DNA of 32,000 nt from Paramicrosporidium saccamoebae KSL3 (lineage: Eukaryota; Fungi; Cryptomycota). Below are positions 2,363-32,000 of the stretch, one piece after another. Under the pieces are notes generated by a model. It ran no database searches. It saw only the letters and a list, made by a program, of their open reading frames with translations, and was not told the DNA's origin. The stretch covers positions 22,172 through 54,171 of the forward strand of contig MTSL01000095.1 of the NCBI GenBank assembly GCA_002794465.1, read 5' to 3'. A program made the translations under genes and the position numbers. Position 1 is the stretch's first letter. Every line of letters begins with the position of its first letter.

Positions 2363-2428
2363 TGATTGTTACTGGATCAGATATATTCCAAGACCCATAT
2401 TAAAGGTCCAACCATGCAATATATACTA

Positions 2429-3040: not shown

Positions 3041-3411
3041 GATGCAAATAAATTATCCCTTTTGGTGCGATGGCATATCCACGGACCAAGAATCAAGGGT
3101 CTATTGATGGGTGAGCTTACTTTTATTAAAGTATATTACCTCTTCATATGTAACCATTCTTAATATAACCAAACTGAGCTGTGGAGCCGCTATTCGAGTC
3201 GGACTCACCAATAACAAGTGGATGTTGTTTAACAGGGTCCTTTAGTGCGCGAGAGCATACCTTTGCTAAAGGCGTCATTGTAAACCGCCGCACTAGATTG
3301 TGGGATGGCCTATCGGGGTTATCAACCATAAACGGATACCGTAACATGACACTTTATTGCAGGACCACATTGTCCATTCACTCTATTGTGCCCTGAGGTG
3401 GACTCTGTCAT

Positions 3412-3633
3412 TCATAAGCCAACCACTAGTTTAATGCAGTACAAAAAGTATCTGATAATCAAGAACTGAACGGTAGCGACCCAAAGGAAGCCAGTTTCAA
3501 AATTGATAAAATTGTGCAAACTTTCAGCTATGGATTCCGCCCCTTGTTGTGGCAAGGGACCCGGGCAGACTTGGGCGGCATGTGTGTGCACTGTCAGAAT
3601 CGCCAGTAAGAGTGAAACTATCGTAGCTTTCAT
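3412..3633 (-). CDS. Small (73 aa) signal-peptide plus C-terminal hydrophobic helix protein
   Basis: ATG start; MKATIVSLLLAILTVHTHA signal peptide; C-terminal GFLWVATVQFLIIRYFLYCI hydrophobic segment. Confidence 0.5.
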   Translation of the reverse strand: MKATIVSLLLAILTVHTHAAQVCPGPLPQQGAESIAESLHNFINFETGFLWVATVQFLIIRYFLYCIKLVVGL

Positions 3634-3755
3634 ATCCGACTACAGCAAAACACTTAATGCCGCTCCAGGGTGTGCCAAGGCTTAATTGAGTGAATAAATG
3701 CCTCATTGGCTCCGATTTTATGGACTGGCTGACTATCTACACAGGCGTGAGGCGT

Positions 3756-3989
3756 CTACAAGACCCCTTCAAGCAGAGCGTTAAGAAAATGCATAGCAAT
3801 AAGGGTGATCAAAAAATACAAGATGGGGTCGCATGAGTGCCCATCTTGGAATCGGGCTAGTGCTTGAATTTCTGCTCGCCCGTCATTTCTCTTTGGTGGA
3901 ATTCCTACTCCTGCCGCTTCGACTCCAAAAGCCGCACTGAAAATAAAAAGCATGGCAAGGAAGGTCAAGGCGGTAAGTCGCAGGCTCAT
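3756..3989 (-). CDS. Small (77 aa) signal-peptide plus C-terminal hydrophobic helix protein
   Basis: ATG start; MSLRLTALTFLAMLFIFSAAFG signal peptide; internal KR; C-terminal PILYFLITLIAMHFLNALL hydrophobic segment. Confidence 0.5.
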   Translation of the reverse strand: MSLRLTALTFLAMLFIFSAAFGVEAAGVGIPPKRNDGRAEIQALARFQDGHSCDPILYFLITLIAMHFLNALLEGVL

Positions 3990-4244
3990 CTTGAGTAAAG
4001 ATTAAATCCTTTTCCGTCTTCAAATGGAACCTGTGACAGTCCTGGCTTACTGCTTGAAAAATCTGCAGTACCAAATTCCAAACCCAATATCGTTCAAAAT
4101 ACGAGTGTCGCCTAGTGGTTATATATACCAGTGTCGCCATGTTCCCCCATATGCACTGATCGCACTTTCATTATGTGATTTAGGGGGCTGCCTAATTAAA
4201 TTAGTGACCCCGGACCGATCAGAACGCAGGACGTAAAAACGACT

Positions 4245-7200
4245 ATGGCACACCGCGTGACCGTACCATATACAAAAATACGGGGCTTTACACTCTTGTT
4301 ATCCGTGCTGTCTAGTATAGTTTTCGCGTCGAGTCTGCACTGGCAGTCTAATAACAACTTATACATTGCTACACAGTACGAAAGGTTCTGGCAAGAAACG
4401 GTACAAAGGGTCAATCTTGGTGACCAGAACGCGACTGGTAATGCTATCCACCGTTGGAAGAACCGCCCCATAACTTTTTCACGGGGAATCAACCAAAATG
4501 GAGCAGAAACTATAGTATCTTGGCCACGTAATGCTTTGAATCAGGGGGTCTCAGCATCGTCACATCTTGCTTTCTCGCTTATTCGGGATTTGACTTTGGG
4601 AGAAGTATCAAATTTGGATCCTGAAGCATGCACAGTGTTTGCAAAGTACCTTGACCCGACCCAGTTACAGAGCGTCAGCACAGAGTGCACGGCACGTCTT
4701 GTAGCCAACTGTAACAATCCATTAGTACGTGGGAATTCCGCCCTGTCCCTTCGGGGAATTCCCTACAGTTGGTTTGTTGGAGAACTTGGTATTCACCTGT
4801 TCACCGCTCTGCATGACCATGGTCTCTTGTCAAACTTGCCAGCTATTACGCTATCAACACTATTCTCGACAGAGCGCTTTTGCAGCTTGCTCAGGGCAGA
4901 ACACATTGGTTCGGTGGAGACTCCCGAGTATCCACTCAAATCCTTGGCTCCAGAATGTGTGGCAAAGATGCAAAACTTGGACTGTGTGCCACTTGCGCCG
5001 GCGATTGTCGGGGCCATGGGCCCGGCAGCATTTTCAAAGATGGGGGTGCTAGTCCATGCGGACACTTTCAAAAGAATGTCTGCGATACAATACGCTAGTT
5101 ATGGTCAGGACGTGCCTGAACTTCCAAGGAAACAATGTGCAGGCCGTCTTGAGTGGCAGGATTTGCTCGCCAATGTGGATTACTTGAAAGGATTGCCAAG
5201 GCTCTTTGAACCATACGATGTTGCCTATCCAATTCCCGATGTCTCGCTAACAAAAGAAATCTTTGCAGAGCTGGCAGACCATTCACCGGCAATCGCAGGC
5301 CGTCTTCTGGTTGTTCTTCCTGTCTTACCCGACGACATCCTTTCCCTATGTGGTCCGAGGGCACTTTATAGCCTACGGGCGTACAAATGTCTCCAGTTCA
5401 TCGACAGCGGAATTGATGTTCTGGGCGACCTTAACCACCATTCAAACAGTCGTCAGATTATCGAAAACATTCCTTCTGAATATTGCAAGCATCTGAGTCT
5501 GGAAGACTACTTAAAGTACAAATGGATCCGCGCCAGTCTAAGTAGCGAATGTCGAGAAAAGTTACCTTTCAAGACTGACCCCGAGGCAATAAAACAAGCA
5601 CCCGAGATGGCTGATGAGAATTACAAGGCAGAGCTTTTTCCAAATGAGCAAAGACACTTTACCACTGAGGAAGAATTGGGGGCTCTCGTGACGGATATAG
5701 CATGGGTTCCTTGCAGTGTCCATAATACTCATGCAGATCTTGAATGTTCTCAAGGACTTTTTTCTGTTCCATTGGATTACGAGTCACCCAACGGCGAATG
5801 GATAAACGTGGAAGTGTATCGATACATTTTTATTGGAGCCAACCCAACATCACAGGTTATAATGCTAGCGGGTGGTCCAGGTGGATCTGTGTTTCGATAT
5901 AAATCTTGCACCGATAAAATCTTACGCAGGACGTACGACTCGACAGCAGTGTATTATTACGAACATCGTGGATTAGGTGCAAATGGATTCAAACCAGACC
6001 ACATCTCTGCCCGTCCATTGCATGACATTATCTCCACTGCGCCCTTTGACATGAAATATCTGACTGTTGAGAACGCAGCATTGGATGTGAGTCTGTTTGC
6101 CAAAGCGATTAAACGCGACATTCCGGCCACAAGCACGCAAGTTGGGCTGTTTGGAGTGTCGTATGGAGCAGCACTGGCTCACCATGTGGTGCAGCTGTTC
6201 CCAAACATGTTTGATTTTGCGGTATTAGCAGGGGTACCTTCCATCCCTGGAGAAACAGGTATTGATAATTACAACGGATTGCTACTCCATTGTCAAATGG
6301 ATGAATTCTGCAGATCAAAGATTGGAACCGTTGCCGATTTCAAGGCTGTTCTCAAAGAGGTTGCATCTAATCGTCATTTGAATCAGTGCACCGAATATTT
6401 TCACGAAACACTCCGCCTTGAAGAGCAATGGACGGTTGGTAGAAGGATCCGATCGATCGGAGAACAGCTTATATCAGACCTAACCAACGCAATGACGGCG
6501 CGTCTTTTATTACCAGTGATAAAGTCAACCTTTGACTGTCAGAATTACAGTATCTACAAATGCGCGCTTCACAGTGTCATGAATTTGAGAACGTCTGCTT
6601 ATCCTCCTGTACCATTGAAGAAACCCACCGGGCATCATAAGAAGGATGAGTCTAATGATACCATTTTAGATGTTGTTTCCCTTGATTATCGCCTGAAAGA
6701 CATGAAGTTTGACATTATCGGAGCGCAGGAAAAGCAGTTAGAGCTATTTTCGAGCCTCACCAAGGAAGACTCTACATACGACACTTATCGTCGCGCTGGT
6801 GAATGTCTAGCGGGACGACGGCTATCGCAAATCAAACCAGCAGTGACTAGAAAGACCTTTTTTATTATTTTTCAGAACCTACTGGATCTAGTTACACCAT
6901 TTCAAGCTGGCGAAAATTTGTTTGCAAAAATTGAGGCCCCCCAGAAATGGCTCATTAGAACTGATTCCCATCAGCATTCCTACTCAGAGGTGCTCATGGC
7001 GATTCTGGTTCAGGGGGCTACCTTTGGTGGAAATATTATGTTCAATGAGCTGCAGGCTAAAGTCGGTACTACGGATATTGGCCTTCCGGGCTTTTGGGAC
7101 TTGAGCAGTCTGCCAGCCGTCAAGGGAATTTGGGACATTGTCAGCGACATTAAACACAAAACCGAAGCCCCAATTGTTCCTCCAAGAATAATGAAAGTGG

Positions 7201-7661
7201 GCTCAATCAAAATTGCCCAGTTCCGATCCATCATGGCCTCATTTAGAAACAGATTGACCTGGGGTCCCTCAAAAGAGGCATCACCCACTGTCAATGTAAC
7301 GGTAGGGTGGTTTGTCCCTGGTAAAAACGGCATTAAGATGAACAAGTTTCAACCGAAAGGGACTCAGTCTATCCGTCACATAATTGTGTTCCCAAGGATT
7401 GATGAATCGCGGCAGCAACTCATTCAGCGCCTTTTTGGCATAATCGATCAACTCCAATGTTCTGTTTACGTCCTCTGTGCAAAGGCTGCTATCAAGGCCG
7501 ACCCAGAAAATCTCTCACTGATTACCCGTGAATTGTTACTCTTTGCTACTGCGATTCGTAATAACGATCCTGACATTATGTTTCAAATGGACCAGCCTCC
7601 TGATGATCCGGAACTGCCTCTGAAAATGGCGCAGCTGTTTCCAGGCCTGTTCATAGCTTAA
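4245..7661 (+). CDS. Secreted multidomain protein: Cys-containing helical N-terminal region plus S33/TAP-like alpha/beta-hydrolase peptidase plus unknown C-terminal domain
   Basis: 1138-aa ORF with an N-terminal hydrophobic segment. Hydrolase motifs SVPLDY, LAGGPGGS, EHRGLG, nucleophile elbow GVSYG, candidate Asp (LLDLVTP) and candidate His (DSHQHS). Confidence 0.8.
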   Translation: MAHRVTVPYTKIRGFTLLLSVLSSIVFASSLHWQSNNNLYIATQYERFWQETVQRVNLGDQNATGNAIHRWKNRPITFSRGINQNGAETIVSWPRNALNQGVSASSHLAFSLIRDLTLGEVSNLDPEACTVFAKYLDPTQLQSVSTECTARLVANCNNPLVRGNSALSLRGIPYSWFVGELGIHLFTALHDHGLLSNLPAITLSTLFSTERFCSLLRAEHIGSVETPEYPLKSLAPECVAKMQNLDCVPLAPAIVGAMGPAAFSKMGVLVHADTFKRMSAIQYASYGQDVPELPRKQCAGRLEWQDLLANVDYLKGLPRLFEPYDVAYPIPDVSLTKEIFAELADHSPAIAGRLLVVLPVLPDDILSLCGPRALYSLRAYKCLQFIDSGIDVLGDLNHHSNSRQIIENIPSEYCKHLSLEDYLKYKWIRASLSSECREKLPFKTDPEAIKQAPEMADENYKAELFPNEQRHFTTEEELGALVTDIAWVPCSVHNTHADLECSQGLFSVPLDYESPNGEWINVEVYRYIFIGANPTSQVIMLAGGPGGSVFRYKSCTDKILRRTYDSTAVYYYEHRGLGANGFKPDHISARPLHDIISTAPFDMKYLTVENAALDVSLFAKAIKRDIPATSTQVGLFGVSYGAALAHHVVQLFPNMFDFAVLAGVPSIPGETGIDNYNGLLLHCQMDEFCRSKIGTVADFKAVLKEVASNRHLNQCTEYFHETLRLEEQWTVGRRIRSIGEQLISDLTNAMTARLLLPVIKSTFDCQNYSIYKCALHSVMNLRTSAYPPVPLKKPTGHHKKDESNDTILDVVSLDYRLKDMKFDIIGAQEKQLELFSSLTKEDSTYDTYRRAGECLAGRRLSQIKPAVTRKTFFIIFQNLLDLVTPFQAGENLFAKIEAPQKWLIRTDSHQHSYSEVLMAILVQGATFGGNIMFNELQAKVGTTDIGLPGFWDLSSLPAVKGIWDIVSDIKHKTEAPIVPPRIMKVGSIKIAQFRSIMASFRNRLTWGPSKEASPTVNVTVGWFVPGKNGIKMNKFQPKGTQSIRHIIVFPRIDESRQQLIQRLFGIIDQLQCSVYVLCAKAAIKADPENLSLITRELLLFATAIRNNDPDIMFQMDQPPDDPELPLKMAQLFPGLFIA

Positions 7662-7719
7662 CATTTAAAGGTGAGAATGGTCACTGCCAAGTTGTACGGA
7701 AGCTCTTTCGTGACTTGCT

Positions 7720-8311
7720 TTATTGCAGGCTGCGGGGGGGAGTGCATAACGGAACAAAATCCCCAATGAAAAAATTTCCATTACAAATTTCGCAACGTCC
7801 GTCTGCCTTACTGTCCAGTAAGACGGACAAATCACACATTGCTTTTTCTAGGTATTCGGTGATTCCCAATAAAGCTTTGCTAATCACTAACCCGGCGAAG
7901 ATGGTTGAAAGGAAGCCGAATCCATTATTGGCAAAATTCCAAATAGTTCTATACATGGATTCCACTCCTTGTTGTAAAAAACGACTCGGGTAATCCTGCA
8001 CGGATGTGTGTGCTATCAGGATCGCCAACAAGAGTGTCACTGCTGTAGCACTTACGTTTGATTGCAGTGAAACGCGTAATCCCATCGAAAACCCAATCCA
8101 GGGCATGTCAAAGCTTGGCCGGCTGATTTCTGATGAAAATTCTGATCCGAGATGCCTTTCCAATAAGATTTATGAGTTGACGCTCTCCGATGCTGCAATG
8201 CAAAACAACTATCCCAGCCTTACTCTTCAAATGGACAAGTCTCCTGATGTTGCGTGGTCATGGGATCATCACAAGGTGAGACAGTGGCCCCGGCATCAAG
8301 CATCATTATGA
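7720..8311. CDS. Probable small gene of unresolved strand and structure
   Basis: Two competing models. Minus strand: ORF 7720-8106 with two hydrophobic segments and a CxxC. Plus strand: same-frame ORFs 7715-7993 and 8006-8311 joinable by a 30-nt GTAATC...CAG intron at 7990-8019. Confidence 0.3.
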
Positions 8312-9021
8312 CTTGCACTGAGAATGTAACACTGTATGAAGAATTGCTCAAAAAGACTGAAGAGTATGTCAAGGTGTACATGGCACAGTACAATGACACT
8401 TCTCACGACTGGTCACATATCCAACGCGTCCGCAAAATGGCCCTCAGTATTGCCCAGCTGGAAGAACGCCCCGTCAACATGCAACTAGTCGAATTGGCGG
8501 CTCTGCTCCACGATGTCGGCGATGCCAAATTCCTGTCGTCTGGCACAGATTGCGAGACAATCCTCCGAACTTTTATGACTGAGGCGGGTTATCCGACACA
8601 TCTCCAAGAGGGCATTCTCTGGATCCATCAACGGGTCTCGTTTCGATACGAACTGGAACATCCGGATAGTCACATTGGGCTCTATCAATGGGAGTTGGCG
8701 TGTGTACAGGACGCCGACCGATTAGATGCAATTGGCGCCATTGGAATCGCCCGCTGTTTCTCGTTCAATGCGGTGCGCAACATGCCGCTCTGTGACCCAA
8801 ACATTCCCCCCAATGTAAACGGCAACGCTGAGCAGTATAAAAAGTCGAGTGCAAAGTCGAATGCGAGAAATCATTTCTATGAGAAGCTGTTTAAGATTAA
8901 AGGGATGATGAAAACCGAGGCCGGCAAGTCCGAAGCTTCAAGGAGACATTGTCTGATGCGGGAATTTATCCTGGAATTTGATCGCGAATGTGGATTAGAC
9001 TCGTCCCTACTCCCCTCATAA
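8308..9021 (+). CDS. HD-superfamily metal-dependent phosphohydrolase (YedJ/YpgQ-like)
   Basis: Motifs SHDWSHIQRV, LAALLHDVGDAK, QDADRLDAIGAIGIARCF, HFYEKL and MKTEAGK...RRH. First eukaryotic-style ATG at 8308. Confidence 0.9.
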   Translation: MTCTENVTLYEELLKKTEEYVKVYMAQYNDTSHDWSHIQRVRKMALSIAQLEERPVNMQLVELAALLHDVGDAKFLSSGTDCETILRTFMTEAGYPTHLQEGILWIHQRVSFRYELEHPDSHIGLYQWELACVQDADRLDAIGAIGIARCFSFNAVRNMPLCDPNIPPNVNGNAEQYKKSSAKSNARNHFYEKLFKIKGMMKTEAGKSEASRRHCLMREFILEFDRECGLDSSLLPS

Positions 9022-9088
9022 TAAAATCACCCACATCTAGAGTCTATGAGGAGATCCTAGTGGCTTTTGTCAACTCGCAACATTAATT

Positions 9089-9974
9089 TTATTTCTTGTT
9101 ACCAGCAATTGACGCCACCCGTGTCGCCTCTTGGACGGTCCTGGCTAGGACACTCCTAATTTTCCCATCTTCCATTGTGAGAATCCCAGCAATTGTGCAT
9201 CCGCCGGGTGTCGTCACTGAATCCTTAATCTGCGCCGGGTGTAAGCCGCTCTGCAATACCATCCGTGCTGCTCCTTGCAAGGATTGCGCTGCCAGCTCCA
9301 CTGCAACATCTCTAGTTAAACCCATCATCACTCCGCCATCGGCTAATGCGTCAATCATAATGCTATCATTAGCATTCATGCGAGTAGACGGTACCAAGCA
9401 AAAGCAGGACCGCTGCCGCAGAGGGCAGTTACGGCGTCCATGTGGCGGTCGGCAACGAAGCGGATGCGTCCCAAACATTGCATCAAATGTTCGACGGTGC
9501 TGCTGACTTTGGAGGGGAGGGAAGGCGGAGTAGCGAGTACGACCATCCCTTCGCGGATCTGACAGGGAGTGTTGGTCATTACACGGACGACGTGGCTTTC
9601 AGGGAACCATTCCTGGCATTTTGTGAGCGTAATTCCTGCCGCTATGGAAACAACAATCTTTTCCTTGCACAGCTGCCTAATTCGGTCAGTCGCATAATCC
9701 TCCACCATTTGGGGCTTCAGACTACATGATCAGAAGAACCAGCTGGCCAATACCAAAGGAGAATCACATTGGCCCATTCTGTGGTTTCTTCGTTTCCGCA
9801 CGCAAACTGCGAGGCGGGAAAGAGTCGTTTTAATCGTACTACCGTCTCCTCGCGGCCTGCCGTTCCGCGGATCTGTGAAGCTTCAAGAGTTCCAGACTCG
9901 ATGAGTGCAGCCATTATACATTTTCCCATAGTACCACAGCCGATTATTCCCAGTCGCACTTCAGCAGTCTCCAT
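9089..9974 (-). CDS. PRO3: Pyrroline-5-carboxylate reductase (273 aa, 3 exons)
   Basis: Exons 9974-9754, 9721-9395, 9362-9089; two 32-nt GT-AG introns. Motifs GIIGCGTMG (Rossmann), VSIAAGI, RVMTNTP, TALCGSGPAF, VTTPGGCTIAG. Confidence 0.96.
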
Positions 9975-10846: not shown

Positions 10847-12829
10847 ATGCAGACGATCCCCCAGGCACAACCGAATCGACCGCGACGTGCTAGCGAACCA
10901 TTGTCTCGTAGTCCTTCATCGCTTCACAGCCTACTCCGCTCCCATGATTATTTTTCCCGTCTGGACGAGGTGGTTTTGGAGCGGATCATTGGCAAATTGC
11001 ATATATGGCGGTTGGAAGCGGGAGATTTGGTGGTGAAAGAGGGTGAAATGGGCGATTCAATGTTTCTGGTTGCCAGTGGCACAGTGCAAGTCTATTCGGA
11101 GGGTACAGAGGCGGTGCTGGCTGAAGTGCACCGTGGAGGATTCTTTGGGGAATTTGCTGCCTTATTCAGGGTGCCCCGAACAGCCACTATTAGGACAAAG
11201 AAGCCTACCACTTTATTAATAATCAGAAGAGCATGCTTGTTAGAGGCACTAGCAGGACATGAGGACATGCTGCGATCAATTGTAATGACAGCCCAGCGTC
11301 GGTATCGCAAGTTGATTCCCCCGCATGTCGTTTTGGGACACAAATCCACCGCCCATTCACAAATAGCCGCGCTCAAGAGCAAATTCCCTCAATTCAACGG
11401 ATTGGGCGACGATTATCTCGAGAGCCTTATTGGACATTGTCGGTTCGGATGTGAACCACAAGGACAGATAGTCTCTTTCTACAACAAAACCCACGTCATC
11501 CTCATCCTCACCGGAGAAATCCGGCTTATAGACTCTACTGTCGATTTTGCGCAATTTGGAAGCGGAATGGTGGCAGAATTCAAACGCGATGACTTTATGG
11601 CGCACATGGTAGCTGAGAGCAATTGTTCGTTCATTGAAGTGCCTATTGACATTTACCACACGGCTCATGATGGAAAGACTTTACCCAAAGCCATGGCCAA
11701 ATCGTCGGATGGCCCAAATGTCCCACTAAGCAGTACGATCCAGCAATCGCTTGGAAGCAAAAGACGGCATTCCGTTGACGTCGTTTTCTGGCACGACCAA
11801 ATCCCAACTCCAAATGCACGAATGGTCCACTCGTTTCGTCAACTCTCCATCACAGCGGGACCGGACATTGCTGAGCTGTGTGAACTCCTCAATACCCACA
11901 ACATCCGTGTCGACGATCCTACCAAAGTGCTTCCCGGTCTGGACGGGACGCGTATTGATATTTCATGTATTAAGAACCAAGTGACTGATGCAATTGTGGG
12001 AAATCTCATCACACTCTGCGGACCGGTCCTAAGACAAGTGAACCTTTCAGGCTCTGGAATTACTGACAAGTCTCTTGATGCACTTTGTGGCGTTGCAAAG
12101 ACCATCACTCACCTTGACCTGTCAGACTGTGTCTTGGTCAGCAGCAAATCATTGTATGCACTATTTCAAAACTGTACTCGTCTGACCCATCTAAACGTGG
12201 CAAATTGTCCTGGCTTCAATGACGACTGTCTCCAAGGTCTGCTTGACACCCCTTTGGTAGACATTAATGCCTCATTCTGTCGAAACTTGGGTCCCTCATG
12301 CTGGAAGCTTATTGCCTGTCATGCGCCCACTCTGGAGCGTCTGGTGCTTCATCGAACCATTGCCCTTGACGAGGAATCGGTTCTCTCTGCCAGTGAGGTT
12401 CCGTTCCCCAAACTGCGTATCTTGGATTTGGCGGAATGTGCATTCCTCACATCAACGGGTCTGCGTCTGATACTGCATGGATGTAGTGCTCTCGAGCAAT
12501 TGGGTCTGTCTTTTTGCACTGGTCTTGACGAAACACTCTTAAAGACGCTAGCATATCTAGAGGACTCACCTCTTATCAGTTTGGATCTCTCATACTGTAC
12601 CCGGGCAGCCGTTGATCGCACCGTCAAAGGACTATTGAAATGCACACCGCGTTTGCAATGTCTCAGTATGCGTGGAGCCCGACATTTGACTGTTGGATGC
12701 TTGGATGCACTGCTACAACTACCCGTATTGTCAGTGGTGAATCTGAGTGAGTGTCCGGGTATTCCCTGCCAGACGCTCCAGAACCACACAAACCAGTGGA
12801 GGTTACTGACAATTGAGAAACTCATCTAA
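10847..12829 (+). CDS. Cyclic-nucleotide-binding domain plus leucine-rich-repeat (FBXL/AMN1-type) protein
   Basis: cNMP domain with an intact phosphate-binding cassette FFGEFAALFRVPRTATI, a second degenerate cNMP-like segment, and about 10 Cys-containing LRRs (LxxLDLSxC). PKA-type sites RRAS and RRHS. Confidence 0.88.
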   Translation: MQTIPQAQPNRPRRASEPLSRSPSSLHSLLRSHDYFSRLDEVVLERIIGKLHIWRLEAGDLVVKEGEMGDSMFLVASGTVQVYSEGTEAVLAEVHRGGFFGEFAALFRVPRTATIRTKKPTTLLIIRRACLLEALAGHEDMLRSIVMTAQRRYRKLIPPHVVLGHKSTAHSQIAALKSKFPQFNGLGDDYLESLIGHCRFGCEPQGQIVSFYNKTHVILILTGEIRLIDSTVDFAQFGSGMVAEFKRDDFMAHMVAESNCSFIEVPIDIYHTAHDGKTLPKAMAKSSDGPNVPLSSTIQQSLGSKRRHSVDVVFWHDQIPTPNARMVHSFRQLSITAGPDIAELCELLNTHNIRVDDPTKVLPGLDGTRIDISCIKNQVTDAIVGNLITLCGPVLRQVNLSGSGITDKSLDALCGVAKTITHLDLSDCVLVSSKSLYALFQNCTRLTHLNVANCPGFNDDCLQGLLDTPLVDINASFCRNLGPSCWKLIACHAPTLERLVLHRTIALDEESVLSASEVPFPKLRILDLAECAFLTSTGLRLILHGCSALEQLGLSFCTGLDETLLKTLAYLEDSPLISLDLSYCTRAAVDRTVKGLLKCTPRLQCLSMRGARHLTVGCLDALLQLPVLSVVNLSECPGIPCQTLQNHTNQWRLLTIEKLI

Positions 12830-18836: not shown

Positions 18837-20757
18837 TCATTCGGATAATTCAATCGCGTCAGAGTCGCTACTATGTGGTCGTTTCCGGATAAACTTATCT
18901 AACCGGAGCTGCGATGGATCATGTTGTTGTTTCTGCATCTTGGAAAAGTCGTTTTTGCAAAGTCCCACCTCTTCCAACATTTCTAGCTTTTTTGTAATCA
19001 GAGGCCAAATTAGATCGTCACTGGTTCCTTTGGCCAGCAGGTAATGCACATTGACGGCATCACATTGTCCGATTCGATGTGCACGGTCCTCCGCCTGCAG
19101 GAGAACCCCGGGATTCCAAAAGAGTTCTGCAAATATCACCGTGGTGGCTGCAGTCAGGGTGAGACCAGTGGAAGCAGCAGTAATACTCAAGACTGCCACC
19201 CGAATAGTTGGATCCGTCTGAAAGGCCGTACATAGATCCTGTCGTGACGAGGTTGCCGTCTTTCCGTCAATTCGGATGAATCGAGTCTTTTTGACCAGTA
19301 AGTGCCCTTCAAAGGCATCCAACACTGACTGATGATGTGCAAAGATGAGCATTTTATGGTCTGCATCCAAAAGATCGTCAATATACTCGAGCATTGCCGG
19401 CAGCTTCAGCTCAGCAGTGCGTTTCCACAAGGCCATGTATTCCGTCTTTTTCTGAAACTCTTCCAACGACTCGTCGTCAATGTTCTGGGGAATCTTTCGC
19501 AAGTCTAACAGTTTTTTAAACATGTCCAAATCCTTTTGTTTCACCTTTAGGAACACCTAAAGACATTAGTAACGGCTAAAAAGCTTACTTGATGGCGGAG
19601 CTTACGAGGAAGTTGGGAGAGAACTTCATCCTTCATTCTCCGAATAAGAATGGTACGTTCAAGCACCAGCTGCAACTCTCTCAGATTAGAGGATCCCTTA
19701 AAGTCCCACCCAAACGTCCCTCGATGTCCATTGCAATATCTTTTACCAAAATCAAAGAATCGGGAGAATAATTTGGGCTGAACCGCCTGAATCTGCGGAT
19801 ACAGCTCCAATGGTCGTGACAATGCTGGGGTTCCGGAAAGCAGAATGGCTCGGCCTGCCTGCTTTAGAACCGGCACTATGACTTTGGATCGCTTCGACTC
19901 GGAATTCTTGAGTGCATGGCTTTCGTCAGCAATAACCACCCCAAACTTACACGCTGTGACTGGGAGCAGTTTGACTGCCAGATCATAGCTCAGAATATTG
20001 ACCAATCCGTCCAATTCGCCTTTCCCATCATAAACGACGCGGATCGTATCCACTGGCACTGATGGAATCCATCGTTTGACCTGTTCATGCCAAGAGGCCA
20101 CCATTGAGGCGGGAGTGATAATGAGAAGCGGCCATTCCAGTCGGTAGAAGACGGCAATTGCCAACGCCTGGATTGATTTTCCCAATCCCATGTCATCCGC
20201 CAACATTACTCTTCCATTTCGAGATAATGCCAACTCTACCCCTTCTCGCTGGAATGGATATAGCGACCCACAGAATTCTATCCCCGAGAGATTAAATGTG
20301 CGTTGGGGAGACTCGACGCCATGAAACAGCGATAGGACGTTTGGGGGAATCTGATCCTCTACTGCCGGCTTATTAATTCCAACCCGTTCCACTACAGTTC
20401 AAAGAGTCATGTGGGCGTACAAAAGACGGAATATGATTGGAGAGGGAAGCGCCAGATGTGCTCCTCTTGGATAAATCTGGCACCCGGCACCTCCTTAAAT
20501 ATGGGATATAGCGGACCATATGCCGCAGTGCAAAACGTTGCCGACGAGTCAAGCTGAACAACCATTCGCCAGTTCAGCTTTTTCTTCTCCGCCGTCACTG
20601 GCGCGGTTGGTGTTGGTTGGGGCGCAGACGACGGTTTGACGACCATTGTGGTCGGTTTCCGCTGCTTCAGCCGCTCAAGGGCGTCCAGTCGGTTTCGTTC
20701 GATACGCGCCCGTTGCTCCACTGTCAGTCCGTCGTTCTCCATCGGGGGCCCATGCAT
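18837..20757 (-). CDS. SMARCAL1: SMARCAL1/HARP-like annealing helicase (SNF2 family), 619 aa, 3 exons
   Basis: Exons 20757-20421, 20391-19589, 19556-18837; introns of 29 and 32 nt. N-terminal RPA-binding-like helix [19 protein letters not shown], one HARP-like domain, [43 protein letters not shown]. Confidence 0.93.
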
Positions 20758-25573: not shown

Positions 25574-27855
25574 ATGGTGGTCAGCGCATTTTGCTTCAGC
25601 GCGGCTCGCTTCCGACGGCTGGTAATTCTGCTGGCCGTCATGCTGAGTGTCAGCTACATCTATGTGAGCATCTTTGGACGGGTGGAGATTGACGAACGGA
25701 CGATTATCCGAATCAAGGATGGGATGCGAGAGGGGTTTATTCGGGGAGCTTCCTCAGTAGGGTTGGCACCGGTGGGAGGTCGCTATGGCACCGCCGACCA
25801 TGACGACAACCCCGCCATCCGGAAAAAGCCGCCGGTAAGGGAGTCGAGGACAGAACCAGAGAAGCCCAAAGAGCTTGAAATTCCCGACGAGGATTTCACC
25901 GGAGACAAATTCGAGCCCGGAATGGAGTTGACTAAGAATATGATGCGTCATGCCTGGGATGGTTATCGCAAATACGCCTGGGGCGAGGATGAGGTGGCGC
26001 CCATTAGAAAGGGTCCCATCGGCTTTCTCGGTCCGCAATCCCTACTCGTCAGCATTATCGACTCGCTCGATACGCTAATGATTATGCGGATGGACGCTGA
26101 ATACGTCGAGGCCCGCGACTATCTCTTCTCACAATTGACCTTTGACAAACCAATGAATGTGTCGCTCTTCGAGTGCAACATTCGTATCTTAGGAGGTCTA
26201 CTAAGTGCCTTTGCGTTGACAGGAGATGGGAGGTATGTTACCAAGGCGTTTGACTTGGGCCAGCGCTTCATGTTTAATTTCAATGATCTTGAAGTCTTTC
26301 CAGACAACCAACTGAATCTAATGGCCCATACTAACAAATATGGATCTATAGATGTATCACCGGAAAAAGTGTTGTTCCTAGCACAGGTCGGCACCTTTAG
26401 TTTAGAGTTTGCATATCTTTCGGATGTGCTCAACGATCCAGTTTACAAGAAACGCGCCCTGGATATTGTGGAGAAAATTTCGCAGATGAAGACGACCCTC
26501 GAGGGCTTATATCCGGCATCTTTGCATCCTAATGTAGTGGAGCAGCGGGATGACTGTAATTGCATTTTCGGAGCATTGATTTTGTAGATTACTCGGTGGG
26601 TGGTCAATGTGACTCCTTCTACGAATACTTGCTAAAGTACTATCTTTATTCGGGAAAACGGGACAAGCTTCATTACAGAATGTACAAAAAGGCCGTTGCT
26701 GGAATCCGAAAGCACCTGATCCAGCGTCGGAATGGCCGTTTCTTCCTTGTTAATCGAAAGGGCGATCAAGTGATGGAGGAGCAGGAGCATCTGGCCTGCT
26801 TCATGCCTGGATTGCTGGCTTTGGGTGCGCACGAAGATAATGATGCGGAGCTTCTGGAGTTGGCTGGTCAGCTAACAGAGTCGTGCTACATGATGTATCG
26901 CAAACAGCGGGTTGGACTCTCGCCCGAGTTTATCAACATTAATACGATGCGTCCTACCCTGCACCGCACCTATTGGAGCATGCGGCCCGAAACTATTGAG
27001 AGTATCTTTGTTCTTTGGCGCATCACAAAAGACCCCAAATACCGTCGCTGGGGCTACGAAATTGCCCTGGCCATTGAAAAGTACGCCAAGGTGGATGGTG
27101 GCTATGCAGGAATCGAGAATATCCTCTCAAGCCCATTCCAACGCATTGACCGACAGGAAAGTTATTTCCTGGCTGAGACCCTAAAGTATCTCTATCTGCT
27201 CTTTGGGCCCAATGATGTGCTGCCGCTTGATCAATGGGTTTTCAATACAGAGGCGCACCCGTTCCCAATCAACTGGCGAGGAAAGGCATATTCGCAGGGA
27301 AGCAAGCCGGAGCAAAAGTCGCCCGTGTCTGGCACTTTGGTGATGGAGAGTCAGCCCGAAGAACCTAAGCCCAAAAGACGAACAGCAGGAGAGAAAAAAG
27401 TGCCAGCTAAGGAGGATGTTATAGACCAGGTTAATGCAGTTGACTTGGAAGAAGAGGAAAAGACACCAAGACGCCCGCCAGGAATGGGGAAGAAGGTAGC
27501 AGAAGAAGATGGAGATAATGTTAAAGCATCAAGGAACAATAATTCGCATAAAGATGAGGCGATCAGAGTCGCTGATGAAGATGCTGAAGTGCCAAATATT
27601 GAGGTGAAGGGACCTACTACCAAGGAAAATATTGCAAAAATGTCGTTTAAACAGAGCGTCGAAGAGGCTGACGTACCGATTCGCAAGCCAAGGAAGATTG
27701 TCAAAGACGAAACTAATGAGCCGACGAGCAGATCGGCAGTAAAGAAAGCAAGAAAACAGGTCGAGGAAATCGATACCAAAGACGGTCGACTCTCGCTTGC
27801 GGAGCAGTTGGACCCTCCGATGCGTCCACAGATAATTGAAGATAAATATGAATAA
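25574..27855 (+). CDS. MNS1: GH47 alpha-1,2-mannosidase (Mns1/ERManI-like), intact active site, with charged C-terminal tail (749 aa, 2 exons)
   Basis: Exons 25574-26555 and 26588-27855; 32-nt intron. Motifs LFECNIRILGGLL, GQCDSFYEYLLK, EHLACF, MRPETIES, QESYFLAETLKY and FNTEAHP are all intact; N-terminal TM anchor. Confidence 0.93.
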
Positions 27856-27881
27856 ACCGTTGACCAATCACACTGAGCTGT

Positions 27882-29490
27882 ATGTTTGTACTAAGCAGAC
27901 GGACCCTTCGGCGGCTCTCACTACTGCTCATCGGATTTCTTGTCGCGGGATTGCTACATCTGTGGAGAGGTGGTTGGCAAGAAGGACGGATCAAATGGGA
28001 TGAGATTAAGACAACTAAGCTTTTGCGAGCGATAAGCCCGCTGTCTGGGGATGAATATGAAGAGGGGATGCAGTTAGTGATCAGCGTACAGGATGTGTGC
28101 GATAGTAACTGTAGATGACACAACACGCATGGAACGGGTATAGAAAAGTGATCGGAGATGACGAGCTAATCCCTCTGGAGGGGGTTGGAAGATCCGTCTT
28201 TGGCTCGACGTCGGTAGGACTGCAGGCGATCGCTGCCATGGACACGTTACTAATAATGGGACTAACTGAAGAATACCAAGAGGCGCGTTCGGTCGTCTTA
28301 CAGCAACTTGATTTCCAAGAGGTGCCAATTGCAAGGAATTAATGGTGTAGATGCAAATTGCTCTGCCCACCTTCCGGACTACAAGCGAGATTATTGGAGG
28401 ATTACTGGGTGCCTATTCTTTGACGGGCGATGGAGAGCTGCTTCAAAAGGCGGCGCATTTAGGTCACTTGGTACTTGATGGTTTTGTAGAAAGCCTCCCC
28501 ATGCCACTCGTTCTGATTAATGTCACTGGTCGGGCCTCTCGTTCCACACGGGTGCCCCTCGTGGATATTGGCGGATTGTCGCTTGATCTTTGCTACTTGG
28601 GCGATTTGTTGGGAGAGAAGCGTTTTCGGGACCAAATGAGTGCACTGAGTGAATACATTAGATCCGCCGTATTTGGGAATCCGGGAGTGTTTGCAGAAGA
28701 GATTGAGCTACAATTAGAGACATACCAACCCAATGGCGTCTGCTCGCTAGGATACCGAGCTGGACCGGTCTACGAGTACATGATAAAGGACTCGCTCTAT
28801 GTTGCCGGCAGAGATGTCCGTGCCCGTGACACGGCCTATACCCTCACTCAAGTATCTTTGACACGCAACTAAAATGTATAGAACATGCAAAAGGTATTCT
28901 TTGATCATTATGCAAAACAGCATCGCATCGTTCGAGTGGTCAGTTGGGCAATCAGAGAGGAACCCGACCAAAGTGTCTGTTTCGCTCTCGGAACTGTGGC
29001 CTTGGGGGGTGCACCCTCTGACCCCCTTGAGCGCGCCCTCTTTTACCGGAATCTGCGTCTCATTGCCAACACTTGTTTGTCTGCCTTCCTCTCGATGGAG
29101 GAGGGCGATCCCAAAATGCTGAGACCACGGCTTGCAGAGTCGTTGTTCGTACTGTGGCGGCAGACGGGCGACACGGCTTACCGTCAAATGGGACTGCAAA
29201 TGTGCGAGCGGATTGAGTCTTGGAAGGTGTCTGGAGGCTTTACCTTTCCGGGAACCACTGTTCAGCCCGTCTTTCTCCTAGCTGAGACCTTTAAATACCT
29301 ATATCTGCTGTTTGCCCCACGATCCGTGTTGGCACTAGATGATTTTGTCTTCAACACGGCGGGCCATCCATATCCAATCAACAAGGCAGTGCCAGCCGAT
29401 GTGCAAGAGTCGACGGTGGTTCATTTGGGCGGCTATACGCCGAGAAGAAAGGTAAGGATCCTGCAGGCACAAGAACTCTTCCCTGTATAA
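27882..29490 (+). CDS. GH47 alpha-1,2-mannosidase-like paralog 3, catalytically degenerate (506 aa, 4 exons)
   Basis: Exons 27882-28085, 28115-28321, 28351-28851, 28882-29490; introns of 29, 29 and 30 nt. HAWNGY and LAETFKYLYLLF motifs retained; altered motifs FRTTSE, RAGPVYEY, RPRLAES, FNTAGHP. Confidence 0.88.
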
Positions 29491-29534: not shown

Positions 29535-30393
29535 CTATGGGAGGGGCAAGAGGACTGGAATCTTGCGTCCAAGGACAGTTTCGAATTTCCGCATCAAACC
29601 GAGGTATTTCTCTACTCCCGTGTGCACCTTTTTGTACTTTGTCAGAATGGTTGCCAAGTTCTCCTTCATTTCGGCTTCAATTGGATTGCATCTTTCTATA
29701 GCGGTCAGTGGCGGATAGTCACAATGGTACCAAAAAGGTTCAACAGCACCTCAGTAACCCGCCCATATAAATACAAAAAGTTGTCGAAAATAGTCTGCGC
29801 TGCTTGTAATACAGCTGGTATATCAAGATCATCCACAAAAAATTGAAACTCTGTCAATAATGCCAGTAACTCAAATAGTCCCTCCAGTGTGCCGTCTCTC
29901 AACATGCCCAGAACATCTCCATGTCGATAGTCGGGTGAATCCGCTGTTGTGATGGCTACATCACGTCCATTTATCACAGCAAGAGACACGCGATGGACGA
30001 GGTAGCGGGCGTAATTGGCAATGTTGCGCTGGATGCCCGAATGATTGGCATATCGTGTGCTAATGGAGCGGAGAATGTTCATCTCCGTATTAATGTTATG
30101 CACAGCCACTCGACTGTCACCATCGTCCAGCAGGATGTTTAGCAGCCAGAGGCATTTCCAGACCGTCTACAAATTGTAAGCACCACAAAATGGCTTCACA
30201 ATCCAAGAATCATTCCCGAATCTTGTTTTGAGAAAACAGAGCATTTCACTCGTCGTCCCATTAAACGTCGTGTCGACAATTACTATGGTCAGCGAAATAA
30301 ATTCTACAAACCGACACGGTAAGAAAGCTTCACTATTCTAGGACGGTGCGAGGTCGCCCTAATGACAGTCTCCTGCAAGGGCGACAATGCCAT
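29535..30393 (-). CDS. ANTH-domain protein (AP180/YAP180/CALM-like), domain only, 253 aa, 4 exons
   Basis: Exons 30393-30312, 30282-30200, 30166-29731, 29695-29535; introns of 29, 33 and 35 nt. Spliced protein MALSPLQETVIRATS...KLSY...DSWITVWKCLWLLNILLDDG...IANYARYLVHRV...IPVLLPLP follows the ANTH pattern (KAT, W.VVFKAL...LLREG, Y..YL..R). The exon 1 donor is the least certain junction. Confidence 0.75.
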
Positions 30394-31123
30394 GAACAGG
30401 TCGAATGACTCTTTAAGACGCTGCATTGTCCTGATTATGGGTATCCCGGGAACGGGCAAAACGACCCTCGCCCGTCAATTAGAGCGTCATTTGGGCGCAC
30501 TAAGAATTACTTTTGACGAAATTCAGCATGAAGGCAGTCTGCGCGACAAACACGACCGGATTTATGATATGGTGAAGAGCTCTGACGACACGGTCATTTT
30601 GGACGACACTTTTCACCTGCGGAGCATGCGCACGAGATATTGGCAGCTCTGCAAGAGCGAGGGAAGAGGAGTGGTTTTTGTGCTGCGCAAATGTCCTGTG
30701 GAAGAGGCCATAGACAGAGATACTGCTAGAAACGGTAGCGACAGGATTGGCCGGGAGATCATTGAAAGGATGAATGCGCAATTTGAACCTTTACGCAAAA
30801 TGCAGTCCAAATATCTCATTATCCTGGAGCAGCAGATTGACCTTGGTGAAATACACAGGATACTAAAGCTATCAAAGAGGGACTTTGAATATCACCTCAA
30901 AGTTGAGATCCACCAGCAGGAGAGCGGTATTCATCTCGCGAACATCCAGCTTAATCGCCAAGTCAGCCAACTAATTTCCAATTTGCCCCGCGACGAACAC
31001 TTTTTTTTGAGGAGGGGGGAAATTCTTGAATGGAAGTCAAATATGCTCCAGCAAATACGACTGCTGCTCGCTGATGGGACTGATGCTGATATATCACAGA
31101 TCAACACAAGAGAAATCCTATAG
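30392..31123 (+). CDS. PSTK: L-seryl-tRNA(Sec) kinase (O-phosphoseryl-tRNA(Sec) kinase)
   Basis: P-loop MGIPGTGKT. ILDDTFHLRSMRTRYWQL resembles PSTK (ILDDNFYYQSMRYEVYQL) rather than KTI12; CPVEEAIDRDTAR lid; C-terminal IHLANIQLNRQVSQ resembles the PSTK H..D..LRRIVSQ helix. Alternative ATG at 30362. Confidence 0.75.
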   Translation: MNRSNDSLRRCIVLIMGIPGTGKTTLARQLERHLGALRITFDEIQHEGSLRDKHDRIYDMVKSSDDTVILDDTFHLRSMRTRYWQLCKSEGRGVVFVLRKCPVEEAIDRDTARNGSDRIGREIIERMNAQFEPLRKMQSKYLIILEQQIDLGEIHRILKLSKRDFEYHLKVEIHQQESGIHLANIQLNRQVSQLISNLPRDEHFFLRRGEILEWKSNMLQQIRLLLADGTDADISQINTREIL

Positions 31124-31145: not shown

Positions 31146-32000
31146 TTAGTAAATAGGAATGTCGACTGGAACATACGCATGATGGAAGTACATTTCAGCG
31201 TCCACTCCGGCAGCCTTGATGGGTGTGGATGTGGCTGTGGAGGTGATGGGAGTATGGTCAGTAGTAGTGCTCATCGTAGTAATGTCAGAGGTTGGAGTGT
31301 GCTCAGTAGTAGTTTGAGGTGTGGACGGCTGATCCGTTGTTTCTGTACTTTCCGTAGTCGGCGTAGTGGTGAACTCTGTTGTCTCGGTGGTCCCGGTAGT
31401 TGGATCAAACGTTTCAGTCGTGGAGTGTTCCGTAGTCTCGGTAGTATCAGTTGTAGAGTGTTCTGTAGTCTCGGTAGTTTCTGTGGTAGAGTGTTCTGTA
31501 GTCTCGGTAGTTTCTGTGGTAGAGTGTTCTGTAGTCTCCGTAGTTTCTGTTGTTGTAGGATGATTAGTCGTACTTGTGGTGGGATAATCAGTCGTCTCAG
31601 TCGTGCTTGGAGTAGAGGGTTCAGTCGTCGCCGTAGTCAAAGGAGTGCTCTCCGTTGTTACTGTAGTCGCTGTAGTAAATGAAGTCTCTGTAGTAGGAGT
31701 GGAAGTAGTCATAGTAGTAAGTGTGGTGGGCTCCATAGTGGTGGTCATAGGAGTAGTTGTTGAGATGGTAGTCAAGGTAGTCGGCTCTCCAGTAGTCTCT
31801 GTCGTCATCTCAGTGGTGCTCTCCTCCGTGGTGGACACTGGTGTGGTTTCCGTAGTATCTGTAGTGAATTCGGTGGTTTCTGTAGATTCTGTGGTAACAG
31901 GAGTAGTCTCCGTGGTAGTTTCTGATGTGGGCTCTGTTGTGATTGGAGTCGTCTCTGTAGTCGGAGCGGTGGTCGCTGTTGTTACCGGAGTCGTCTCTGT
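31146..32000 (-). CDS. Thr/Glu-rich mucin-like protein, 5' end outside window
   Basis: Frame open to position 32000; dominated by T/E/S/P (TTETTETTEHS repeats), consistent with an O-glycosylated surface or stalk region. The true C-terminus may be spliced. Confidence 0.82.
   Translation of the reverse strand, partial: TETTPVTTATTAPTTETTPITTEPTSETTTETTPVTTESTETTEFTTDTTETTPVSTTEESTTEMTTETTGEPTTLTTISTTTPMTTTMEPTTLTTMTTSTPTTETSFTTATTVTTESTPLTTATTEPSTPSTTETTDYPTTSTTNHPTTTETTETTEHSTTETTETTEHSTTETTETTEHSTTDTTETTEHSTTETFDPTTGTTETTEFTTTPTTESTETTDQPSTPQTTTEHTPTSDITTMSTTTDHTPITSTATSTPIKAAGVDAEMYFHHAYVPVDIPIY
31420..31551 (-). repeat. 4 x 33-bp coding tandem repeat (TTETTETTEHS)
   Basis: Plus-strand units gtagagtgttctgtagtctcggtagtttctgtg at 31420, 31453, 31486 and 31519. 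Confidence 0.95.

Follow-up and report, generated by a model that had tools for sequence, protein, structure and literature searches.

The window analysed here, 32,000 nucleotides of contig MTSL01000095.1, comes from Paramicrosporidium saccamoebae, an amoeba parasite belonging to the Rozellomycota. On its + strand, an uninterrupted reading frame in the ORF list of the window (30362..31123) runs from ATG to stop and encodes a PSTK-type kinase of 253 aa; the coding sequence is complete, stop included, and identical to the gene called on the NCBI contig. This ORF is a real gene, far beyond chance, and its product, searched as a single sequence, matches the M. jannaschii PSTK (MjPSTK) with E=5e-7 over residues 20-235. 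Translation may in truth begin at the second ATG, Met11 at nt 30392, since this is where the closest orthologue (P0002) starts; the first ~19 residues of the window protein show no conservation and are of low confidence in the AF2 model. A preliminary description of the same DNA, made from the letters alone, had placed a PSTK gene here, and we found the ORF and the motifs it named (the P-loop, ILDDTFHLRSMR and HLANIQLNRQVSQ) all in place. It had also spoken of a compact fungal-grade genome, which agrees with the 7.28 Mb and 3750 gene models of P. saccamoebae.

The N-terminal domain (30419..30835, + strand) is supported by the Pfam AAA_33 and KTI12 N-terminal matches, by the AF2 model and by hhalign. 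Its AF2 model contains five parallel strands with pLDDT >90. The P-loop, GIPGTGKTT (residues 27-35; 30440..30466, + strand), is invariant or nearly so in the clade alignment, and its G27, P29, G30, G32, K33 and T34 are the equivalents of MjPSTK G11, P13, G14, G16, K17 and S18. The PSTK form of this loop, GxP(G/A)xGK(S/T), a motif defined in PMC2275090, is present in the window protein and in 15 of the 16 clade members, the exception being P0018, in which a Ser stands in for the Pro; in KTI12 the (G/A) position is occupied by C or S. The Walker-B Asp52 (30515..30517, + strand), invariant in all 16 members, corresponds to Asp41 of MjPSTK, whose D41A mutant is inactive (PMC2275090). When aligned with named PSTKs, MjPSTK and KTI12, the core motif ILDDTFHLRSMR (residues 79-90; 30596..30631, + strand) follows the PSTK form DD(T/N)x(Y)YxSMR: the window protein reads DDTFHLRSMR, with the DD and the SMR kept and the Tyr-Tyr changed to His-Leu throughout the clade. 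At this site KTI12 has D(S/G)xxYIKGFRY.

The RxxxR lid motif, RDTAR (30716..30730, + strand), carries R119 and R123, which align in the clade alignment with R116 and R120 of MjPSTK. R123 is invariant and R119 is found in 15/16 clade members, at sites where KTI12 has W/Y/R and a non-Arg residue. The combination of the PSTK lid, RNxxR, and the Walker-B Asp is found in the window protein (D52, R119, R123), the Asn that follows the first lid Arg being Asp120 here and either N or D in the clade as a whole. Mutational work on MjPSTK (PMC2275090) showed G14, K17, S18, D41, R116 and R120 to be essential, and all six are matched or conservatively replaced (G30, K33, T34, D52, R119 and R123). The window protein is a conserved relative of PSTK with its catalytic residues intact, and is probably active.

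The N-terminal domain is followed by a helical C-terminal domain (CTD) of ~90 residues (mapped to residues ~161-237; 30842..31072, + strand), which profile comparison, Foldseek and hhalign find to be homologous to the tRNA-binding CTD of PSTK. With the CTD alone, hhalign gave PSTK 81.5% probability and E=1.1e-5, whereas the yeast KTI12 CTD came out at E=0.52, without similarity. In the AF2 model its helices span residues 161-206 and 214-237, with a third helix short or missing; the third CTD helix of MjPSTK is, on this model, probably missing from the window protein.

This domain bears directly on whether the protein could be a generic kinase of the AAA_33/DxTN type, acting on small molecules or polynucleotides, to which an unrelated helical tail is attached; the preliminary description had named a generic AAA_33 kinase as an outcome that would refute its reading. 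AAA_33 is indeed its top Pfam match, ahead of KTI12, and DxTN/AAA_33 kinases such as T4 polynucleotide kinase and gluconate kinase share its P-loop, Walker-B Asp and RxxxR lid. However, these enzymes have a single domain or other partner domains, none with a helical tRNA-binding CTD of the PSTK/KTI12 type, whereas the tail seen here is PSTK-homologous. Moreover, the clade HMM gives short kinases 36-62 bits against 95-131 bits for PSTKs (the median for yeast KTI12 being 27.5), and the top six Foldseek matches are all full-length MjPSTK, ahead of all single-domain kinases. The clade did join the short-kinase outgroup in 24 of 60 neighbour-joining (NJ) replicates, a grouping which is the expected long-branch artefact. 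We consider a generic kinase very improbable.

KTI12, the Elongator-associated tRNA-dependent ATPase, is another candidate. It shares its superfamily and P-loop fold with the window protein, and its family is sister to that of PSTK, both being built on one two-domain plan (PMC2275090). The gene could be the KTI12 orthologue of this lineage, an Elongator cofactor diverged in a parasite to the point of looking PSTK-like; the second rank of KTI12 among the Pfam matches speaks for it, as does the clade scoring no better on the NCBIfam PSTK models than genuine KTI12. Against this stand the profiles. The clade scores 3-21 bits with the KTI12 HMM, and on the Pfam KTI12 model it reaches 38-48 bits, compared with 69-101 for PSTK and 323-334 for real KTI12. 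The window protein itself obtains 47.8 bits on this model (PF08433), over profile positions 3-170 of 271, where real KTI12 covers 1-271; in both the window protein and P0004 the match is confined to the N-terminal domain. Comparison of alignments by hhalign gave E=2.1e-38 for clade against PSTK, over 216 columns and both domains, but E=7.5e-14 for clade against KTI12, over the N-terminal domain only; when this domain was compared separately, the values were E=3.2e-39 with PSTK and E=1.9e-15 with KTI12.

Motifs and folds point in the same direction. The KTI12 signatures D(S/G)xNYIKGxRY(E/Q)L and NRWDSPLF are absent from the window protein, as is every signature motif of that family, and their places are taken by DDTFHLRSMR and FEPLRKMQSKY. 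At sites 14, 80, 116, 120 and 192 (MjPSTK numbering), PSTK-type residues replace all the KTI12-type ones. A search with the clade profile reached MjPSTK over its full length (E=2.8e-27, aligned as far as residue 244), and CtKti12 chain 6qp0, present in the library, was not among the matches listed (E up to 1.5e-3). Foldseek ranked the same CtKti12 structure (PDB 6QP0) seventh, through its N-terminal domain only. Among the best 150 matches drawn from 1.84 billion representatives there was no KTI12-type scorer, and those which bear a name are animal PSTKs. Profile, motif, domain-wise and fold comparisons thus place the protein closer to PSTK than to KTI12 in both domains, in agreement with the first reading of its motifs, and the hypothesis of a KTI12 orthologue, for which we see very little chance, is largely refuted.

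Phylogeny was less decisive than the profiles. The NJ bootstrap tree was built from 162 sequences, with PSTKs from outside the fungi and KTI12s from yeasts; in its quartets the clade grouped with PSTK in 32 of the 60 bootstrap replicates (53%), with the outgroup in 40% and with KTI12 in 4 (7%). The tree thus argues against KTI12 but does not separate a PSTK grouping from long-branch attraction to the outgroup. The KTI12 references are all from Saccharomycotina, as are the best 120 matches of a yeast Kti12 query. The comparison with KTI12 by reciprocal HMM and phylogeny proposed in the preliminary description comes out in two parts, the profiles siding with PSTK and the NJ tree giving that grouping 53% support. 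Taken with the rest, it is likely that the kinase belongs to the PSTK lineage and not to that of KTI12.

The name PSTK is a separate question. Both domains are PSTK-like, but by the curated NCBIfam equivalog models the protein falls short of the name, with 40.7 bits on both against cut-offs of 382 (TIGR03575) and 290.5 (TIGR03574). Genuine yeast KTI12 obtains 20-76 bits on these PSTK models, the same range as the clade. Because genuine KTI12 scores about the same, such sub-cut-off matches are uninformative either way, and we dropped them as evidence for PSTK. For annotation, this means that weak NCBIfam PSTK or Pfam KTI12 matches cannot tell the two families apart, while the residues at the five MjPSTK positions given above do.

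Comparison with named PSTKs shows what has been kept and what has changed. MjPSTK (PDB 3A4L, 3ADB), the best sequence and fold match in the PDB, resembles the window protein in length (~250 aa) and two-domain plan and has the DD(T/N)..SMR core in common with it, but the two are only ~21% identical. Outside the clade, the closest named relatives among the matches listed are eukaryotic PSTKs, animal proteins annotated as L-seryl-tRNA(Sec) kinase (for example from Owenia, Chrysoperla and Anabrus). Eukaryotic PSTKs are longer (~270-360 aa), carry behind the P-loop an insertion that is absent from the clade, and have Tyr-Tyr ahead of the SMR where the clade has His-Leu, and H..D..LRK in the first CTD helix where the clade has H..N..LN(R/Q).

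It is in this helix that the most telling differences lie. The helix, HLANIQLNRQVSQ (residues 191-203; 30932..30970, + strand), was placed by a residue map in the same register by HMMER and MAFFT. Its His191, at helix-1 site 192, is common to the window protein and eukaryotic PSTK, KTI12 having a Gln. In PSTK, Asp195 and Arg199 read the D-loop of tRNA-Sec (PMC3035459), and PSTKs across the range from archaea to animals (12/12) have D/R at these two sites; the window protein has Asn194 and Asn198 instead. The helix pattern H..N..L.R.VSQ, which had been taken as a PSTK mark, is accordingly one only in its His, a genuine eukaryotic-PSTK residue, and not at the Asp195 and Arg199 sites, both of them Asn. 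Of the 16 clade members, 14 have Asn at position 199 and 9 have it at position 195, and an acidic residue at position 195 is retained only in P0014 (E/R) and P0018 (D/R). Since P0018, a syntenic orthologue, retains D/R, the Asn/Asn state is derived.

A second recognition element is remodelled as well. The loop Q148-S149-K150-Y151-L152 (30803..30817, + strand; residue map) occupies the site of K142-Y143-K144-W145-D146 in MjPSTK, so that K-Y-K-W there corresponds to Q-S-K-Y here; the role of the MjPSTK loop in reading the acceptor stem is described in PMC3035459. Trp145 is found in MjPSTK, in 8/11 PSTK references and in 7/7 KTI12, whereas 15 of the 16 clade members have Phe or Tyr (Tyr151 in the window) and one has Leu.

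Could the protein nevertheless be a genuine, fast-evolving PSTK serving a complete and unreported selenocysteine (Sec) pathway? It would then phosphorylate Ser-tRNA(Sec) for SepSecS, with contacts that co-evolved with a divergent tRNA-Sec. A conserved PSTK-type gene argues for such a pathway, since the PSTKs studied so far strictly co-occur with SepSecS and tRNA-Sec and decay after Sec loss. Indeed, PSTK co-evolves precisely with SepSecS (PMC2275090), pstk was lost or pseudogenised in insects after the loss of Sec, and bona fide Sec machinery in fungi always occurs alongside tRNA-Sec. In the present case purifying selection has maintained the gene in at least eight lineages, its catalytic residues all in place. 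The published material describes Sec as vertically inherited from the fungal ancestor with a patchy survival in early-diverging phyla. Amses et al. 2022 state that every fungal phylum but four encodes Sec; Rozellomycota are not among these four, so the wording may include them.

Several observations oppose a working Sec pathway. The loss of Trp145 and of the otherwise invariant Asp195/Arg199 affects the very residues that read tRNA-Sec, and the scores lie far under the PSTK equivalog cut-offs. The published lists of Sec-using fungi, to which Gonapodya, Bifiguratus and Harpellales belong, name no Rozellomycota species in the texts consulted, and the survey which reports tRNA-Sec in only 8/1197 fungal assemblies reports none from Rozellomycota in its accessible part, where P. 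saccamoebae is not confirmed as one of the 1197. Rfam detected neither tRNA-Sec nor SECIS in the window (32 kb) or in 92 kb of eight related loci, a very weak negative. A SepSecS scan of JGI metagenomes gave 198 hits, and none of the 80 loci kept was from the four samples that carry the relatives; as its patterns were human-specific 8-mers, this result is uninformative. In the portions of the literature at hand, PSTK, KTI12 and the Sec machinery are not connected with Paramicrosporidium or Rozella anywhere except in the ambiguous sentence of Amses et al. 2022. On balance, we regard a complete Sec pathway as doubtful, though a possibility to be taken seriously.

The best explanation we can offer is that the product is a P-loop kinase of two domains, dependent on tRNA, which probably descends from eukaryotic PSTK and not from KTI12. 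By analogy with PSTK, the N-terminal domain would bind ATP-Mg and the 3' end of the charged tRNA, the C-terminal helices would clasp the body of the tRNA, and the aminoacyl (seryl) hydroxyl would receive the gamma-phosphate. The residues which read tRNA-Sec (Asp195/Arg199, Trp145) have been swapped for another set, itself conserved in the clade, and the altered recognition residues suggest that the window protein may do a different tRNA job. As these residues are replaced and the gene evolves ~2x faster than its housekeeping neighbours, the likeliest reading, to which we give an even chance, is that of a PSTK derivative, retargeted or orphan, whose tRNA target has changed and which works outside the canonical selenocysteine pathway. 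The substitutions are in themselves no proof of a changed substrate, because MjPSTK withstands Ala at several of the residues that contact tRNA, and when deprived of its CTD it retains 40% activity (PMC3035459).

A further rival to this reading involves KTI12. A PSTK-derived protein could have taken over the KTI12 role in a lineage devoid of KTI12, acting as a tRNA-stimulated ATPase for Elongator. tRNA-Sec activates Kti12 as well as PSTK, functional overlap between the two has been discussed, and the remodelled tRNA-recognition residues fit a switch to other tRNAs. However, the protein bears no sequence likeness to the KTI12 CTD, and we found no literature on Elongator or KTI12 for this lineage. 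Such a takeover appears improbable. As for the origin of a retargeted kinase, we tentatively propose, at somewhat less than even chances, that the PSTK gene outlived the Sec trait in Paramicrosporidium-like Rozellomycota and persisted over hundreds of millions of years because replacement of its tRNA-Sec-reading residues gave it a new tRNA target.

These possibilities matter because PSTK counts as a strict marker of the Sec trait, published surveys never finding it apart from tRNA-Sec and SepSecS. If the Sec pathway is real, Sec usage would reach the most deeply branching fungi, the neighbours of Microsporidia. If the kinase is an orphan, the marker rule would be broken by an enzyme derived from PSTK but acting on a new tRNA. 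If PSTK did outlive Sec, this would be the first PSTK known to have been neofunctionalised, and its activity as a tRNA-dependent kinase would be new to eukaryotes.

The history of the gene within its own group is clearer. Orthologues of 25-77% identity share its gene neighbourhood in at least seven related uncultured lineages, where they lie downstream of GH47 genes (found upstream of the kinase in L005, L008, L009, L010, L092 and L093). The closest orthologue is 77% identical, with a dN/dS of 0.17 relative to the window gene, and the kinase gene is under purifying selection. Its divergence is nevertheless fast by comparison with that of SNF2, the kinase being 37% identical between genomes whose SNF2 proteins are 70-77% identical. 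A search of the word-indexed database with the clade-alignment profile gave 9 matches, one of these members lying in the NCBI assembly GCA_020047435.1. Vertical inheritance within the Paramicrosporidium branch of Rozellomycota is the best explanation for this distribution. Horizontal transfer from the amoeba host is not favoured, because the synteny spans lineages of 42-60% GC. The tRNA gene which adjoins the orthologue in L092 is an ordinary tRNA-Thr(AGU).

The window kinase is encoded on the + strand by an ORF whose ATG lies at 30362 and whose stop codon ends at 31123 (253 aa). The ORF list and the motifs bear out the preliminary description exactly, with the P-loop GIPGTGKTT at residues 27-35, ILDDTFHLRSMR at residues 79-90 and HLANIQLNRQVSQ at residues 191-203. 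The NCBI gene call on MTSL01000095.1 (GCA_002794465.1) gives an identical protein. Since the closest orthologue begins at the position of Met11, nt 30392 may be the true start codon; residues 1 to ~19 are unconserved in the clade (the window kinase and its relatives) and poorly modelled by AlphaFold. The organism belongs to the Rozellomycota and is an intranuclear parasite of amoebae, with a genome (MTSL00000000) of 7.28 Mb, 46.9% GC and 3750 gene models (Quandt et al. 2017, PMC5701793), so that it was rightly called a compact fungal-grade genome. The genes surrounding the kinase are eukaryotic (cNMP-binding plus LRR, WD40, SNF2, ankyrin, RING and tandem GH47 mannosidases).

The curated models TIGR03575, TIGR03574 and PF08433 do not decide between PSTK and KTI12: the window kinase scores 40.7 bits on both TIGR03575 (cut-off 382) and TIGR03574 (cut-off 290.5), genuine yeast KTI12 proteins score comparably (20-33 and 45-76 bits, respectively), and both families fall under Pfam PF08433. 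The discriminating tests all favour PSTK. A profile of 14 clade members matched MjPSTK at E=2.8e-27 over positions 4-239 of 255, CTD included, and the Chaetomium Kti12 chain (6qp0) was absent among the matches listed, down to E=1.5e-3; this chain was within the searched library, as a Kti12 probe found it at 1e-23. The reciprocal HMM comparison proposed earlier also sides with PSTK when run locally. The clade HMM gave PSTK references 95-131 bits and yeast KTI12 a median of 27.5 (7-52), the PSTK HMM gave the clade 63-118 (window kinase 117.6) and yeast KTI12 a median of 51, and the KTI12 HMM gave PSTK references 22-60 and the clade 3-21. With hhalign, the clade aligned to PSTK at E=2.1e-38 over 216 columns and to KTI12 at E=7.5e-14 over 123 columns, all within the NTD. 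By domain, the NTD values were 3.2e-39 for clade-PSTK, 1.9e-15 for clade-KTI12 and 6.7e-23 for PSTK-KTI12, and those of the CTD were 1.1e-5 (81.5% probability), 0.52 and 0.18, respectively. On the taxonomically broad Pfam KTI12 model, real KTI12 proteins scored 323-334 bits at full length, real PSTKs 69-101 and the clade 38-48. None of the best 150 matches to the window kinase among 1.84 billion representatives reached a KTI12-level score, and the named proteins among them are annotated animal PSTKs (Chrysoperla, Owenia, Anabrus). Finally, the six best PDB fold matches to its AlphaFold model (pLDDT 86.6) are full-length MjPSTK, the Kti12 NTD coming seventh.

The tree is the weak point of this placement, and published PSTK trees are likewise without signal. 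In NJ quartets with 60 bootstraps, where the KTI12 references were yeasts throughout because they were drawn from the best 120 matches, the clade joined PSTK in 32 replicates, a short-kinase outgroup in 24 and KTI12 in 4. The outgroup placement is a long-branch pattern, and that the protein is a generic kinase appears very improbable. A true KTI12 orthologue is just as hard to credit, given the 4 replicates of 60 and the absence of the KTI12 signatures YIKGFRY and NRWDSPLF from the window kinase/clade alignment.

PSTK is defined by GxP(G/A)xGK(S/T), a Walker-B Asp41 and RNxxR (R116, R120), and G14, K17, S18, D41, R116 and R120 are needed for its activity (Sherrer et al. 2008, PMC2275090). The corresponding residues of the window kinase are G30, K33, T34, D52, R119 and R123, and these sites are invariant in 16 clade sequences except for Gly or Ala at the G14 site, acceptable since the motif permits either, and Met at the R116 site of one member (P0004). 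Furthermore, the clade has the PSTK state at every family-diagnostic site in Mj numbering: G/A at 14 (C/S in KTI12), T/N at 80 (L/P), R at 116 apart from that Met (W/Y/R), R at 120 (variable) and H at 192, which the window kinase shares with PSTK whereas KTI12 has Gln.

The surfaces that read the tRNA differ. PSTK recognises the compact D-loop of tRNA-Sec through Arg199, held in position by Asp195, in the first CTD helix, and K142, Y143, K144 and W145 of MjPSTK read the acceptor stem (Sherrer et al. 2011, PMC3035459). Asp195/Arg199 is present in 12/12 PSTKs examined; the window kinase has N194 and N198 instead, and Tyr151 in place of Trp145. Asn occupies position 199 in 14/16 clade members and position 195 in 9/16, and the Trp145 site is Phe or Tyr in 15/16, the helix register being identical by HMMER and MAFFT. 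Two members retain the canonical pair, P0014 as E/R and P0018, whose gene lies directly downstream of GH47, as D/R; the ancestral rozellid kinase therefore carried the PSTK pair, and Asn/Asn arose later within the lineage. In the structural model, the window kinase also seems to lack a third CTD helix. The earlier identification as PSTK rather than KTI12 is thus upheld at the level of the family by profiles, reciprocal HMMs, per-domain hhalign, Pfam, fold and residues, and fails on three features: the score required by the curated models, the pair that reads the D-loop and the Trp of the acceptor loop. The protein is best described as a new, lineage-specific PSTK-family variant. In its residues, the half performing the chemistry is a well-preserved PSTK, and the tRNA-reading surfaces have been remade in a new pattern, itself conserved.

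An exhaustive phmmer search of the 1.84 billion representatives with the window kinase returned 542 matches at E<=1e-3. The top group comprises proteins of ~240-270 aa (a few gene models are longer), 32-77% identical over nearly full length; metagenomes or SRA assemblies are the source of all of them. The neighbourhood is kept in every clade member with a long enough contig (loci L005, L008, L009, L010, L092 in GCA_020047435.1, and L093), and on the longer contigs WD40 and SNF2 (minus strand) precede the GH47 copies. As all of these share the neighbourhood and the loci range from 42 to 60% GC, the proteins are orthologues in diverse Paramicrosporidium-like organisms, and the gene is conserved and vertically inherited. 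The kinase gene is fast-evolving (window versus L005 identities are 37% for the kinase, 40% for WD40, 60-77% for GH47 and 70-77% for SNF2). Its dN/dS is 0.17 at dS 0.71 against the 77% orthologue, and it has been held under selection over a deep radiation.

[quoted passage not shown] 2008, PMC2275090), and insects that lost Sec have also lost pstk or keep it as a pseudogene; it is established that the distribution of PSTK matches that of the Sec trait exactly. The lost recognition residues and the fast rate fit a retargeted or orphan PSTK derivative, to which we give an even chance and which would act on a tRNA other than tRNA-Sec, possibly in a KTI12-like role. The accessible part of a survey of 1197 fungal assemblies, in which bona fide machinery and tRNA-Sec occur together in only a handful of species and in no rozellid, points the same way. 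Replacement of KTI12 by this PSTK-derived kinase, counted within that even chance, is improbable. A more doubtful reading than the retargeted derivative is a real Sec pathway, so far unreported, whose tRNA-Sec would have co-evolved with the kinase; it fits the rule that PSTK does not outlast Sec. MjPSTK withstands mutation at several tRNA-contact sites and has 40% of its activity when the CTD is removed (Sherrer et al. 2011, PMC3035459), so that on sequence alone this reading keeps some likelihood. Neither the 32-kb window nor the related loci scanned (92 kb) contained a tRNA-Sec or SECIS, and a metagenome scan with human-specific SepSecS peptides, which may miss a rozellid SepSecS, listed no match from the relatives' samples. 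We found no mention of the variant in the literature consulted. Either whole-genome outcome, a Sec pathway or a PSTK derivative without one, would be noteworthy.

The same scan recovered a SepSecS gene without interruptions, which shares 44% identity with human SepSecS, at 8001-9500 of both L027 and L048, on metagenome contigs of 139 kb (ERZ778023) and 169 kb (ERZ778019). Such a gene points to a eukaryote that uses Sec and has few introns; nothing found connects it with the window organism. A tRNA-Thr(AGU) gene (5886-5958, +) precedes the kinase orthologue of L092 by ~43 bp; not being tRNA-Sec and missing from the other orthologous loci, it is probably incidental.

Two tandem GH47 genes (25574-29490, +) lie immediately upstream of the window kinase. 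L005 has three paralogues (3485-9060) and L092 three called ORFs (2195-5839), and this arrangement is conserved across Paramicrosporidium-like lineages. In this reduced parasite, the ER/Golgi mannosidases seem to have undergone a lineage-specific expansion. The first window copy (25574-27855, +) is split into overlapping ORFs in different frames, 25574-26587 (Pfam positions 1-203) and 26560-27855 (207-455); its L005 counterpart is a single gene of 607-643 aa, and a short intron, a frameshift or an assembly error would account for the split. Similarly, the SNF2-family helicase (18837-20392, -) comprises two ORFs, 18837-19556 and 19547-20392, overlapping by 10 nt, against one gene of 658 aa in L005, through either an intron or a frameshift. 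Convergent with the kinase gene, their stop codons 22 bp apart, is a gene for a Thr/Glu-rich mucin-like protein with repeats such as TTETTETTEHSTTE (31146-31838, -, running past the window end; NCBI model 506 aa, no Pfam domain); the locus of the 77% orthologue likewise has a minus-strand gene at this position. Two long ORFs, 8-2362 (+; 784 aa) and 4245-7661 (+; 1138 aa), match no Pfam family at E<=1e-5 and encode lineage-specific or highly divergent proteins. In a 660-aa protein (10847-12829, +), a cyclic-nucleotide-binding domain is joined to leucine-rich repeats, which is an unusual domain combination for a reduced parasite genome. Between GH47 and the kinase, a 134-aa ORF (29705-30109, -; NCBI gene 125 aa) has no Pfam match, and the corresponding slot in L005 holds a 148-aa ANTH-domain protein.
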